Shown here in pieces: positions 39,001 through 51,000 of a DNA stretch of 64,000 nt. The notes under the pieces are model-generated. The model worked only from the letters and a program-made list of their open reading frames with translations, ran no database searches and was not told the origin of the DNA. The DNA comes from Hormiphora californensis (taxonomy: Eukaryota > Animalia > Ctenophora). How positions within the stretch are numbered: position 1 is the first letter of the stretch; every line of letters begins with the position of its first letter. Made by a program: the position numbers and the translations under genes. The stretch covers positions 6,820,001 through 6,884,000 of the forward strand of contig CM035357.1 in NCBI GenBank assembly GCA_020137815.1, given 5' to 3'.

Positions 39001-42000
39001 TCAACAAACCCTACAAGTTCACCGTGGACTGCTCCCAGGCTGGAGCTGGACCCGTTCTCTTTGGGTTCATTGGTGATCTCGAGAACGATAACCCAGACAA
39101 CCCCAGGAAGGATATTTTGGTTATTGTGTGCGATGACAAGGGTAACCCAATTAAGGATAAGAAGGGTAAGCCCATTGTCATTGATGTCAAGGAGCTGAAA
39201 TCTCAAGGAATCGCCCACTTCACCTTCACCCCCGAGGTTGAGGGACCTATCTACCTCAAGGCGCAGTATGATGGTAAGGACGTCCCTAAGAGTCCCATGA
39301 AGGTTACAGTCAGCAGTGGAATTGATATGTCCAAGGTGACTGTTTACGGAGATGGAATCACGAACAACAAGCCCGTCCGAGCCAACAAACCCTACACCTT
39401 TGTCATTGATGCCGAGAACGCCGGTGCTGGACCCATCAGTTTGGATTTCCTATCCAAGCTTGGATTTACCATTGGAAAGGACAGCGTGCCCAAGGACATG
39501 AAGGTCACTATTATTGGACCCAACGGAGAGCCAATGAAATGTGATGTGAAGAAGAGGAATGACAAGGTCTTTGAGGTCACCATCACCCCCGAGCTCGTTG
39601 GACAACTGAACATTGAGGTGCTCGGTTCCAATGGAGACCACGCCCCCAAGAGTCCCATCAAGATCCAGATCAAGCCAAGTGTGGACGCTAGCAAGATCGT
39701 GGTCGGTGGAGATGGCATTGAGAAGGATAAGGTACCTAGGAAGGATAAGCTTTGTGCACTCACTGTTGATGCCGGAAAGGCCGGAAACGCTCCTTTCTCC
39801 ATTGGTGTGAATGGACAGGATAAGACACCCGAGAGCGCGAAACCCAAGCCCAAGAAAGGTGCCGGAACTGGACCTCAGAAGGCTGGAGCTGGACTGCAGC
39901 CAGGATCTGGAGGAGAGCCCGGTAGTGAGGGTGCTCCTGCTGGAGCTGGTAAACCAGGTTTTGGACCTGACGGTAAGCCCTCACCTGGAAACTACATCGC
40001 TCCCGATGGAACCATCAAGGATGATAAGAATGCTCCAGTAAAGGGAAAAGACGGCAAACCCCTTACCTGTGCTCTTGGTGATGGAGGCAACCCTAAGGCC
40101 CCCAAGACTGATGATAAGGGTAACCTGGTTGGCCCTGATAGCAAGCCTCTGATTGGAACTGATGGATGCCCTGTGAAGGCCGGAACCGGACCTGATGGAC
40201 CCACCACTGGACCCGATGGAACCCTGTTCGGTAGTGACGGAAAAGCCCATGTTAGGAAAGGATGGTAAGCCGACCAAGGCTGGACAAATGCACGACGGCA
40301 AACCTCTGTGCAACAAAGATGGTGAAATCGTCGGACCTGACAGCAAGCCCGTCACTGGACCTGATGGCAACCCTGTCAAATCCAACAAAACCCCCATTGG
40401 ATTGGCTGTCCTACCCTGATGGATCTTTGGTGACCCCAAGTGGCAAGCCTCTCTGTGGACCCGATGGAAATCCTCTCAAATGTGGCCTGGACTAAGGACA
40501 GGAAGCCCATTATCGATGATAAGGGTGCTCTGTGTGGTCCTGATAGCAAGCCTCTGGTTGGACCTGATGCTAAGGGTATCAAAGCCTGGTGCCGGAGCCC
40601 TCGGACCCAATGTCAAGCCTGATGGATCTCTCACTGATGGAAGTGGCAGGCCCCTGAAGGGTAAGGATGGCAAGCCTCTCAAGGCCGCTATGGGATCTTG
40701 TGGCAAGCCCAAGGTTGACGACAAGGGCAACATGGTCGGACCTGACAGCAAGCCTCTAATGGCCCCCACCAAATCTGGCAGCGGACCTGGTCTCTGTTAC
40801 ATGACACCAGATGGAAATCTTAACGGACCCGATGGTAAGCCCCTGACTGGACCTGACGGCAGGCCCCTCAAGGCCGGTCTCGGACCTGACGGAAAGCCCA
40901 AGGTTGGACCTGACGGTGGACTTCTTGGACCTGATGACTCTCCCCTCGTTGGACCTGACGGCAAACCTGTCAAACTTGGAGATGGACCATGCGGACCTAA
41001 GGTTGGACCTGACGGCAGTGTCTATGGACCTGACGGTAAGCCTGTTGTTGGACCTGATGGTAACCCCGTCAAGGCGGGAACCACTCCCAGTGGAAAGCCC
41101 AAAACCGATAGCAGTGGCAACGTCCTTGGACCTAACGACGAGCCTCTCACTGACAAGAGTGGTAACCCAGTTAACCCAGCCGCTGATGGACCCTATGTTG
41201 GACCTGACGGAAGTGTATTTGGGCCTGATGGCAAGCCACTCAAGGGATCCGATGGATCTCCTCTCAAGGCAGCCATGGGATCTGACGGCAAGCCCAAGAC
41301 CAACGAAAATGGAGACCTTGTTGGACCTAACGGAGAGCCCCTCCTTGGACCTGACGGTCAGCCAATCAATAAAGACGGCAAGCCCATCAAAGCTCCTGAT
41401 GCATTCCCTGGACCCCACATTGGAGATGACGGCACTGTCACCAAGACCGACGGAGAGCCTCTTCTTGGTAAGGATGGTAAGCCCCTCAAAACTGCACCTG
41501 CCGGTAAACCCCAGACTGACCGAGATGGAAACTTGGTTGGACCTGACGGTAAGCCCCTTGTTGGAGCTGATGGAAAGCCCGTTGGATCCAGCGGTGGACC
41601 CTATGGACCCCTTGTCACTCCTGATGGAGATGTCGAGGGACCAGGTGGTCTACCCGTGTGTGGACCCGACGGCAAGCCCCTTACCTGCGAGCAGAACGGA
41701 GAAGGTCTACCCTGCAAGGATGGAGATGGTAACCTCATTGGATCTGATGGTCTACCCCTCATCAAGGCAGATGACAAACCCGTTGTCTTTGGAAAGGATA
41801 CTTCCGAAGAAGCAAACCCCGATGAGCAACCTGCTGACATCAACTGTGTTGTCCTTGGACCTGATGATAAACCTGTGCCCTGCACTGTCAAGGATTTGGG
41901 TGATGGCAAGTTTGCTGTCGAATATGAGCCCAAAGAAGAAGGTCCTCACAAACTTGATGTCCTGGCTGGTGGAGAGCACGCTCCCAAGTGCCCCGTGGAC

Positions 42001-48000: not shown

Positions 48001-51000
48001 ATGGTAAGCCGAAGAGGGACAAACACGGAAATCTATTGGGACCTGACGGCAAGCCCATTATTCCTCCTGGCAAGGCTGTCAACTCTGGTCTGCCAGCATC
48101 CGGAGCTCCCATGGTTGGACCTGACGGAACCCTCCTTGGACCTGATGGCAAACCTCTGCTTGGACCTGATGGCAAGCCCCTGAAGGCCGGTCTCGGACCT
48201 GACGGAAAACCACTGACCGATGCCAACGGCAACCTTCTTGGACCTGATGGCAAGCCTCTACTGGGTGCAGATGGACGACCACTCAAGGCAGGAAGCTCTA
48301 TGAGCCCAGATGGTAACCATGCTTGGACCTGATGGTAAGCCCCTCCTTGGACCTGATGGCAAGCCCCTCCAGGCTGGAGTTGGAAAACCAAGGGTTGACG
48401 AGAACGGAAGAATGCTCGGACCTGACTGGAAATCCTCTACTGGGACCTGATGGTAAACCACTAAACGGACCCATCGTCTCACCTGATGGCACTATCTTGG
48501 GACCTGATGGCAAGCCTCTACTTGGAAAGGATGGTAAACCCCTGCGAGCGGGAGTTGGACCTGACGGTAAGCCCCTCACTGACGCCAATGGCAACGTCCT
48601 GGGACCTGATGGAAAGCCTCTACTAGGAGCCGATGGTAAGCCCATCAAGGCTGGAGCTGTTGTTGGACCTGACGGACAGATCTATGGACCCGACGGTAAG
48701 GTTCTGCCTGGGACCTGATGGCAAGCCCCTACAGGCAACACCTGGTGCCCCTCTCACCGATGCCGATGGTAACATGCTTGGACCCGACGGAAATCCTCTG
48801 ATCGGACCTAACGGCAAGCCAATGAAGGCTGGACTTCCTTCTGACAAGGGAGGACCCATGGTTGGACCTGATGGCACCCTTCCTTGGACCTGATGGCAAG
48901 CCCTTGATTGGACCTGATGGTAAGCCCATGAAGGCTGGCCTTGGACCTGATGGCCTACCCATGGTTGACTCTGATGGCAACCTTCTCGGACCCGGTGGCA
49001 AGAAACTTCTTAGGACCCAACGGTAAACCAATCTGTGCAGGACCTTCTATCGGACCTGACGGTGTTGTTAGGGGACCTGATGGATCGCCACTTCTTGGAC
49101 CTGATGGCAAACCACAGACTGTCATGCTTGACGAGTTCGGCAAACCAATGACATCTCCCGACGGTACTCTGATCGGAGCTGATGGTAAGCCCATTGTTGG
49201 ACCTGATGGTAAGCCAATCAACGATCGACCTGCTCCTCCTAATGGACCCCCTGTTGGACCTGATGGATCTGTCTATGGACCTGACGGAAAGCCTCTGCTT
49301 GGACCTGATGGCAAGCCCCTCAAGGCTGGAGTTGGCCCTGATGGTCTACCTTTGACAGATAAGGATGGAAACCTCCTCGGACCTGACGGAAAGCCCCTGA
49401 AGGGACCCAATGGTTCACCAGTTAGGGCTGGACCATGCATTGGACCGGACGGAGTGGTAAGGCATCCTGATGGAACTGTTGTCAAGGGACTCGACGGATC
49501 ACCAGTTAAGGCCATGGTTGGACCTGATGGCAAGCTCATGGTTGGACCTGACGGCACATGTTCTTGGACCCGATGGCAAGCCTCTATGTGGTCCCGATGG
49601 AAAGCCAATGAAACCTGGCAATGGCATTGGTGCTGATGGTACCCTACTTGGACCTGATGGATCGCCACTCCTCGGACCTGACGGCAAGCCTTTGAAGTGC
49701 GGTATGGGCCCTGATGGCTAACCTCTGCTTGGACCCGATGGTGCCCTTCTTGGACCTGACGGAAAGCCTTTGATTGGACCTGATGGAAACCTCATTGGTG
49801 CTGATGGTAAGCCTCTGCTTGGACCTGATGGCCGACCTGTTGCTCCTGGAACAACTGTCGGACCCGATGGCTACTGTCTATGGTACCGGACGGCAAGCCT
49901 CTGCTTGGACCTGACGGTAAGCCTCTGAAGTGTGGCCTTGGACCCGACGGAAAGCCTCTCCGAGGACCCGGTGGAGAGCTCCTTGATGAGTTCGGCAACC
50001 CTCTCGTTGATCAGTTTGGACGACCTGTCAAACCCGGTACATCTGTCGGACCTGACGGAACCATCTACGGACCTGACGGACGACCTCTCCTTGGACCCGA
50101 TGGCAAACCTCTCAAGGCCGGTCTCGGACCAAATGGTGAACCACTCCTTGGACCTGATGGATCTCTACTCGGACCTGATGGAAAGCCTCTAGCTCGGACC
50201 TGACGGCAAGCCCCTTGGCCCTGGAAAGGACAGGAACTCACGCCACCGGTCTCGGACCTGACGGCAAGCCTCTTGGACCTCTGGGCGCTGATGGACGACC
50301 CCTGCCCGTTGAAGAGGGAGGTGACATGACAGTCATGTGTGTTGGACCCAATGGCGAGCTGATTCCCTGTAGAGATCATTGAGAACCCTGATGGCACGAT
50401 CAGTGTCAAGGCTGCACCCGGAATGGAGGGCGACTTTGTTGCTGATATCATCGGACCTGATGGCAAGAAACTGGCCAGTATTCCCTTCCATGTTGAGCCC
50501 CAGATTGACTCCAGCAAAGTCAAACTCTCTGGCGACAGCATTGACGGAGTCGTCAAGAAGGACCGACCTGCCAACTTTGAGATTGACACCAGCGATGCTG
50601 GAAAGGGACCATTCACCGCATCCCCCTACGAGCCGGACACCGTCAAGAACGGCGGAATTCCAGGAGTCGGTGACAAGAACGGACCCAAGAGTCCCAACGA
50701 GGAGGACACTGATGTCAAGGTGGCCGTTATTGGACCCAACGGAGAGCCCTGTGGACTGCAGTGTCAAGGATCTTGGCGATGGCAAGTTTGATGTTCAGTA
50801 CAAGCCCACCAAGGAGGGACCCCACAAAGTGGTTGTTACTGCTAATGATGACCTTGTTCCCGGTGCCCCCTGTCGCATTTGACGTCTTCCCCAACGGTGA
50901 TGCTAGCAAGTGTAAGGCCAGCGGACCTGGCATCGAGCCCAAGGGTCTCATGGCAGGAAAGCCTGGAACATTCAAGGTGGACGCCACCCGAGCCTGGAGA

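Follow-up and report, generated by a model that had tools for sequence, protein, structure and literature searches.

A ctenophore filamin gene in which giant DG-turn repeats interrupt immunoglobulin domains 7 and 8

We analysed a 64,000-nucleotide stretch of the genome of the ctenophore Hormiphora californensis (GenBank assembly GCA_020137815.1, contig CM035357.1, positions 6,820,001 to 6,884,000 of the forward strand). This whole stretch is called the window here, and coordinates refer to it. At about 36.0-56.3 kb its plus strand carries a single filamin-type gene. Two of the immunoglobulin (Ig) domains of the encoded rod, Ig7 and Ig8, are interrupted by enormous arrays of an 8-residue repeat. 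The gene encodes a genuine filamin with the giant repeats inside Ig7 and Ig8, and on balance we favour the view that they form closed side-loops. The predicted protein consists of a calponin-homology (CH) type actin-binding head and about 23-24 filamin Ig repeats, in total ~6,000 residues. A sequence-only reading of the same DNA had proposed that ~3,400 residues of repeat interrupt these two domains and that the protein is more than twice as long as a vertebrate filamin. The measured sizes bear this out. The three inserts have ~673, 145 and ~2,575 residues, ~3,400 in total, the protein has ~2.3 times the vertebrate length, and each of the peptide landmarks quoted for Ig7 and Ig8 was found at its place. 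The Ig domains were located with an own-domain hidden Markov model (HMM), i.e. a profile of 89 positions built from the Ig domains of the gene itself, and with the Pfam family PF00630 (Filamin). The parts of the gene are:

36059-37644, plus strand: exons of the N-terminal CH (actin-binding) head; PF00307 pieces below the cut-off, a WVN motif, and CH2 by eye.
37767-39665, plus strand: Ig1-Ig6 of the rod; own-domain HMM and PF00630.
39684-39809, plus strand: N part of Ig7 (DASKIVVGGDG..PFSIGV), with strands A, A' and B, the turn 'AGKAGNA' and the C-like stub PFSIGV; HMM positions 1-56.
39810-41832, plus strand: insert 1, ~673 residues of DG-turn repeat; an open frame once four extra bases (~40241, 40414, 40493 and 40581) are removed.
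41833-42009, plus strand: C part of Ig7 (ADINCVVLGPDDKP..CPVDIDV), strands C to G; HMM positions 33-88, Pfam profile positions 21-92.
42022-42045, plus strand: strand A of Ig8 (DMNKLALG); canonical spacing after the G strand of Ig7, position conserved in the orthologue P0159.
42046-42480, plus strand: insert 2, 145 residues in two units of ~65 residues; tandem repeat of period 201.
42481-42567, plus strand: middle piece of Ig8 (GKGLDLKINPKDLG..KLNIKPVGPNDSK), strand B and a C-like stub; weak match to HMM positions 6-51 (E 0.046), the least certain piece.
42568-50319, plus strand: insert 3, ~2,575 residues in ~65-residue units and ~250-residue super-units; extra bases at 43184, 43186 and 48318, and ~11 further frame events at 48424-50232.
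50320-50500, plus strand: C part of Ig8 (GDMTVMCVGPNGELIP..IPFHVEP), strands C to G; HMM positions 49-88, one frame event at 50371.
50504-56309, plus strand: Ig9 to about Ig23/24; HMM and Pfam, frame events at 50762, 50865, 50983, 51140 and 51219.

A giant exon of ~15.7 kb, which extends from 37767 to ~53400 and is coding-like from 37767 onward, is followed by more Ig exons on its 3' side. Its G+C content is 0.53-0.56 compared with 0.39-0.45 across most of the surrounding window. In a Pfam scan PF00630 was matched by six stretches within 37767-40265 (E 1e-100), by seven stretches within 51169-53490 (E 8e-96) and by one stretch within 40561-43332 (E 1e-13), the latter corresponding to the C part of Ig7. 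Between 43308 and 48329 no family was matched in a Pfam library without PF27023. The own-domain HMM gave 26 match segments from 37788 to 56309, where the last one ends; all are on the plus strand and represent the ~23-24 Ig repeats. Thus, the gene has the long series of PF00630 repeats which makes up a filamin rod. For the head, exons were searched singly. The pieces 36301-36570 and 36527-36712 match positions 22-75 and 76-108 of PF00307 (E 1e-4 and 4e-4), each alone being under the cut-off. An exon with the WVN motif is located at 36059-36208, and the CH2 exons were identified by eye only.

The two parts of Ig7 are ~2 kb apart. HMM positions 1-56 fall on the N part and 33-88 on the C part, so the two complete each other as parts of a single domain and share only a C-strand-like stub. 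Hence an extra segment lies inside one Ig fold, in the window as well as in P0159, the orthologue from a second species. Possibly the C part of Ig7 starts earlier than first placed as the Pfam alignment sets in at profile position 21. AlphaFold2 drew 'VVFGKD' (41782-41799) as an additional B-like strand with a predicted local distance difference test score (pLDDT) of ~50; a strand region may extend over 41782-41814. When the domains were aligned by eye, a shared insertion site became apparent, which directly follows the 'AGxG' turn at the B-C corner and precedes strand C, 'h-x-V-x-h-h-G-P-x-G-x-P'. The insertion there becomes larger along the rod. At this site Ig5 (38955-39299) has ~20-26 residues, Ig6 (39321-39659) ~21, Ig9 ~30, Ig7 673 and Ig8 ~2,575 residues, i.e. 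Ig5 and Ig6 carry a short insertion where the giant inserts are found. Ig8 has in addition the separate 145-residue block after strand A; insert 3 comes after strand B and the C-like stub.

Do the interrupted domains fold? The halves could stay unpaired within the chain or be domain-swapped. Then ~3,400 residues would lie in the line of force, the rod would be several-fold longer and the protein would be a spring or ruler in series, of the titin type. Strand-like stubs that are present in duplicate flank each of the giant inserts, and this leaves a little room for readings beyond a clean loop insertion. Yet Ig5, Ig6 and Ig9 with their short loops at the same site must fold normally. Further, the complementary A/B and C-G pieces of Ig7 and Ig8 are 70-76% conserved between the two species, which is hard to explain unless domains are formed. 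Accordingly, we consider an in-series spring unlikely, though it deserves to be taken seriously. Because Ig5, Ig6 and Ig9 accommodate loops of 20-30 residues at this site and because the strand signatures are kept across species, Ig7 and Ig8 would still be expected to fold around their inserts.

The orthologue P0159 is a 1,337-residue open frame on a 241-kb ENA contig with 69% identity to the window protein. In one frame it encodes Ig2-Ig6, the N part of Ig7 (76% identical), an insert of ~570 residues, the C part of Ig7, strand A of Ig8 and the start of insert 2; it runs without interruption through the region that holds four frame breaks in the window. Between the species insert 1 has 66% identity compared with 59-77% for the Ig domains, which means that its constraint equals that of the folded domains. 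Residues of idiosyncratic, non-repetitive stretches can be paired one to one, and lengths differ by entire sub-units. A search for an orthologue of the 3' part with 51094-53490 retrieved only distant filamins, and one with 49013-49558 only repeat proteins of ~49% identity.

Public reads were used to examine 39800-45799. Contigs of four runs were compared with the window, two of them guessed to be DNA (two samples from two studies under one organism label) and two being seawater metatranscriptomes. Where the assembly and the runs differ by a single base, the 40 differences with the best support comprise 39 synonymous changes and one V>I exchange, and 37 of them are at codon position 3. Variation that is almost exclusively synonymous points to translation of the repeats, and we take the region to be coding and under purifying selection on this pattern of substitutions.

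The contigs of the RNA libraries tile 39800-45799 at ~95% identity. They contain the repeats and traverse all five junctions colinearly: 39809|39810 (run X7, record 25), 41832|41833 and, further along through Ig8 into insert 2, 42045|42046 (X7 record 28, X13 record 11), and 42480|42481 together with 42567|42568 (X7 record 29). This speaks against a concern voiced beforehand, namely that the repeats might always be spliced out or not be expressed. A weaker version would be that the repeats are optional and skipped in the main isoform, with an ordinary filamin as the bulk of the protein. Alternative internal segments are indeed common in filamins and in giant genes, and contigs are silent on isoform proportions. 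An RNA-library contig shows a skip from 42863 to 43030, though this recurs in a DNA run and its ends are non-canonical. However, in the RNA-library contigs no GT..AG joint that would remove an insert was found over 39800-45799, removal would demand splice sites exactly at the boundaries of Ig strands, and strong purifying selection implies translation. Optional repeats are thus very improbable. Joints which could be taken for splicing-out of the inserts have non-canonical ends or short sides, or recur in the DNA runs; they were dismissed as repeat-induced contig chimeras. Similarly, a loose end of an X13 contig at 45338 corresponds to position 50468; it stems from a misplaced contig of the C part of Ig8 and does not mark a splice. 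The skip 42863-43030 comprises 166 bases with CC..AG ends, was seen in one X1 and one X7 contig with a shorter side of 20 letters and is probably a repeat-induced chimera; it could also be a length polymorphism.

As given in the assembly, the 15.7-kb exon is not open throughout. It contains ~23 frame events which are clustered at 40241-40584, 43184-43186 and 48318-51219 with long clean stretches between the clusters. The sequence-only reading had named confirmed frameshifts as fatal for a full-length protein. All six breaks within 39800-45799 match bases which the runs omit (40241/45, 40414/17, 40492/93, 40581/84, 43184 and 43186), and deletion of these six bases results in 3,519 stop-free codons from 37767 to 48329. 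At 48318 the window has GGTAACCA but an X1 contig has GGTACCA at its loose end, which removes the seventh break. So all seven breaks for which reads were at hand are absent from the reads; they are real in the assembly, not in the genome, and are assembly errors. For 48.1-51.4 kb a Viterbi walk with codon-usage scores introduced 17 skips, 15 of one base and two of two bases, and left all segments open. With these skips the repeat pattern continues, and the C part of Ig8, Ig9, Ig10 and Ig11 read through; an in-frame TAA at 49719 coincides with one of the frame events. We infer that the remaining 16 sites are extra bases of the same signature, so that the exon would be a single open frame in the genome itself. 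For the Hormiphora californensis assembly PacBio continuous long reads were assembled by wtdbg2, with arrow and pilon as polishing tools (PMC8527503). Insertions and deletions in repeats could survive this procedure. Where coding sequence of the assembly is rich in repeats and GC, gene models will break at uncorrected insertions of 1-2 bases.

The 23 breaks with the in-frame TAA, and the many repeat-induced false joints in short-read contigs, might suggest a decaying pseudogene, an assembler chimera or a collapsed repeat. Against this stand the seven breaks missing from the reads, the openness of every frame segment, the synonymous variation and the same layout in P0159. The pseudogene reading is rejected, and an artefact of assembly has next to no probability.

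The repeat itself is an 8-residue turn motif, 'h-x-G-P-D-G-K-P', rich in G (21%), P (17%), D (11.5%), K (11%) and L (10%) with a net charge of about zero. Consecutive DG or NG motifs are 8 or 7 residues apart. The 8-mers build up units of ~65 residues and these a super-unit of ~250 residues; Tandem Repeats Finder reported periods of 192-201 and 399 nucleotides. The 2P+G value of the repeat is 0.52-0.61, near the threshold for elastomeric proteins rich in proline and glycine such as elastin, flagelliform silk and PEVK. A collagen-like repeat was discarded since a G-x-y periodicity is absent and the DG spacing is 8 or 7. Calcium-binding motifs (RTX beta-roll, EF-hand, DxDxDG) were compared by eye and also dropped as spacing and residues do not fit.

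The proposal of a beta-hairpin repeat agrees with the secondary structure that AlphaFold2 predicts (pLDDT 72-94). A 300-residue block, with 19 paralogous blocks as alignment, gave a mean pLDDT of 72 and a predicted template modelling score (pTM) of 0.47; the pattern was strictly periodic with two bridge residues and a five-residue turn at a period of 8. In a prediction of 41653-42600 insert 2 reached a pLDDT of 83-94 with an almost empty alignment and the C part of Ig7 72-83. Foldseek retrieved only beta-hairpin repeat solenoids and meanders, a likeness of local strand-turn-strand kind with E-values down to 9e-6, and the ESM Atlas returned no usable matches. From these models we read the repeat as a predicted ordered, non-globular array of very short hairpins for which no solved representative exists.

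A different reading of the same composition is an intrinsically disordered low-complexity linker, i.e. an entropic, PEVK-like chain in which composition alone matters. The strong bias in composition at zero net charge would suit such a chain, as would the lack of a matching model in the Pfam library used, of a solved fold or of a usable ESM Atlas match. It does not square with an insert that is 66% identical between species with positional orthology at the level of residues, equal to the folded Ig domains, nor with the near-exclusively synonymous variation, a ~250-residue unit that is shared with another gene, or the high pLDDT of insert 2 at an almost empty alignment. We regard a disordered linker as clearly improbable.

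Like the canonical filamins (FLNa/b/c, Drosophila cheerio, Dictyostelium ddFLN), the window protein has a CH-type head and a PF00630 rod, and its nearest named database matches are animal filamins with 24-36% identity. Unlike these, it has ~2.3 times the vertebrate length and more than half of it is non-Ig repeat within domains, not in hinges. The statement that canonical filamins have only short hinges, made in the sequence-only reading, overlooks a precedent. Vertebrate filamin C has a unique insertion of ~80 residues inside Ig20, which provides a platform where Xin-repeat proteins and other ligands bind (PMC10017460). As in filamin C, an Ig domain of the window filamin is interrupted by an extra segment. 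Compared by architecture only, the differences are considerable: three insertions instead of one, ~3,400 residues (about 40-fold larger), a location in Ig7/Ig8 of rod 1 and not in Ig20, and a conserved 8-residue repeat. Intradomain insertion as such is thus already known; new here are filamin intradomain insertions which are enormous, ordered as predicted, and conserved in two species. The sequence-only reading knew of no description of this architecture, and our literature search likewise brought up no paper on such a filamin.

Among mechanosensitive actin cross-linkers filamin holds a central place, and unfolding of Ig domains and short hinges are the usual explanation of how it behaves. In the protein considered here Ig7 and Ig8 would fold despite their inserts, and the arrays would be closed side-loops that leave the rod and return to it at one corner. 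As long as the respective Ig domain is folded, the loops would be shielded from the tension on the rod. They may serve as long arms for spacing or docking, zwitterionic and multivalent, comparable to the filamin C Ig20 insertion on a small scale. Force that unfolds the clamping domain would free ~3,400 residues of hidden length with a contour in the order of 1 micrometre, and the released length would make the cross-linker unusually extensible. Whether elastic, spacer or scaffold, a role of the loops is something we can only infer. A bolder version has Ig7 and Ig8 as mechanical clamps, or fuses, which close ordered hairpin loops: the protein would be an ordinary filamin of ~80 nm until a clamp unfolds, and then up to ~1 micrometre would be paid out hairpin by hairpin. 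Such a sacrificial-length mechanism is possibly tied to the very long muscle cells or other contractile cells of comb jellies. We offer it as a speculation, and a doubtful one.

Several points weigh against the side-loop reading. Reassembly of the Ig7 and Ig8 halves is presumed from sequence. An ordered array of 2,575 residues with both ends meeting is geometrically demanding. The middle piece of Ig8 matches the Ig model weakly (E 0.046) and has an AlphaFold2 pLDDT <55. The models define the global shape of the repeat poorly, with pTM values of 0.47 and 0.39 and no structural neighbours. The RNA evidence consists of contigs from seawater metatranscriptomes with ~95% identity, in which DNA carry-over is possible and isoform proportions are not shown. 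Last, of the 17 frame events placed between 48.3 and 51.2 kb, 16 are predictions of the codon-usage walk. If the side-loop reading holds, the Ig fold tolerates a domain insertion of kilobase scale. The gene is a natural test system for hidden-length or spring designs in cross-linkers.

How did the inserts originate? Both giant inserts are flanked by two copies of 'strand C + GPxGxP turn'. Two tandem 8-mers are already present in the C-C' turn of Ig5 (DDKGNPIK-DKKGKPIV) and of Ig13 (LDKNGNPI-ANGKKVPV). Because of these bracketing copies and the tandem 8-mers, local amplification from filamin's own hairpin is plausible. The C halves of Ig7 (41833-42009) and Ig9 (50730-50870) are 55% identical whereas other Ig pairs share 17-43%. 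Together with the insertion at the same site this speaks for a recent local domain duplication. Equally possible is an exchange with a paralogous gene on contig C1 (1236000-1265112). This second giant gene has filamin-type Ig domains which are followed by many ~250-residue units of the repeat, set apart by spacers of acidic and P/T-rich sequence; an orthologue of 7,244 residues (P0151) is encoded in another assembly. The ~250-residue super-unit is colinear between the two genes at ~40% identity, so that whole units have moved or co-evolved between them.

Related 8-mers of the DGKP type occur at at least four other loci of the genome and in cytoskeletal linkers of other phyla. A HMMER scan of 1.84 billion representative proteins yielded 412 relatives at E<=1e-3. 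They include a plectin-repeat protein with 'DKDGKPLV' arrays (P0002), a protein of the mollusc Physella acuta (XP_059167298.1), insect proteins with the automatic names collagen-like or CEP250-like, and bacterial proteins of the TrbI/VirB10 family. The likeness to those non-ctenophore relatives is at the level of the 8-mer only and could be convergent. Matches to 49013-49558 (P0234-P0240) are small proteins of marine eukaryotes with 'GPNGELLGPDGKPLL' arrays and a precomputed assignment to PF27023.1, one of them fused to EF-hands. It seems that the repeat was catalogued in Pfam (PF27023) very recently. Giant linkers, i.e. the Physella acuta protein, the plectin-repeat protein and the C1 gene with its orthologue, share the motif x-DG-K-P-L-x in long tandem arrays with the window protein. 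Their arrays are located between domains or are separate units, however, and do not interrupt an Ig fold. Cytoskeletal linkers of several kinds (filamin, band 4.1 and plectin-like proteins) thus contain an 8-residue beta-turn repeat that is uncharacterised and has no solved structure. The resemblance to clostridial combined repetitive oligopeptides, choline- and glucan-binding repeats, Rhs/YD repeats and designed symmetric propellers is restricted to local strand-turn-strand geometry.

According to a preprint, mesocentin is a giant protein in which filamin-type domains alternate with large non-globular regions, and a 'mesocentin-like' protein was among the top ten mass-spectrometry matches of the mesoglea of M. 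leidyi and P. pileus (bioRxiv 10.64898/2026.02.02.702917). Mesocentin (C. elegans DIG-1) is extracellular, whereas the window protein with its CH head should be cytoplasmic. Its CH exons come first and no extracellular families were matched in the parts scanned with Pfam, signal peptides not having been searched for; this does not place it with mesocentin or DIG-1. The mesoglea protein may be the product of the window gene; more likely it is that of the C1 paralogue. The Physella acuta protein (P0007) carries the automatic name 'mesocentin-like' as well. Its Pfam domains are those of band 4.1 (FERM_N/M/C, FA and the 4.1 C-terminal domain) with ~700 residues of DGKP-type repeat in the middle, and the public name looks misleading.

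In the remaining genome a 1,024-residue open frame at C12:4710893-4713967 (minus strand) contains DG-turn repeat that is 39-54% identical to blocks of the window. It is flanked by Ser-rich and acidic sequence, and on viewing the translation by eye no Ig repeat was obvious. Weaker repeat matches are at C4:3580480-3582012 and C10:7428232-7428513. A further gene, at C7:747208-766469, encodes at least 38 Ig repeats of the filamin type. It was considered as the canonical CH-filamin of this genome and set aside since neither a CH match nor a GPDGKP motif was found in the 30 kb examined. Other small PF00630 loci are present. Finally, the window contains two long (CT)n/(TC)n microsatellites which translate as SLSLSL, one at 35417-35655 just upstream of the first CH exon and the other at 54453-54806 in an intron between downstream Ig exons.

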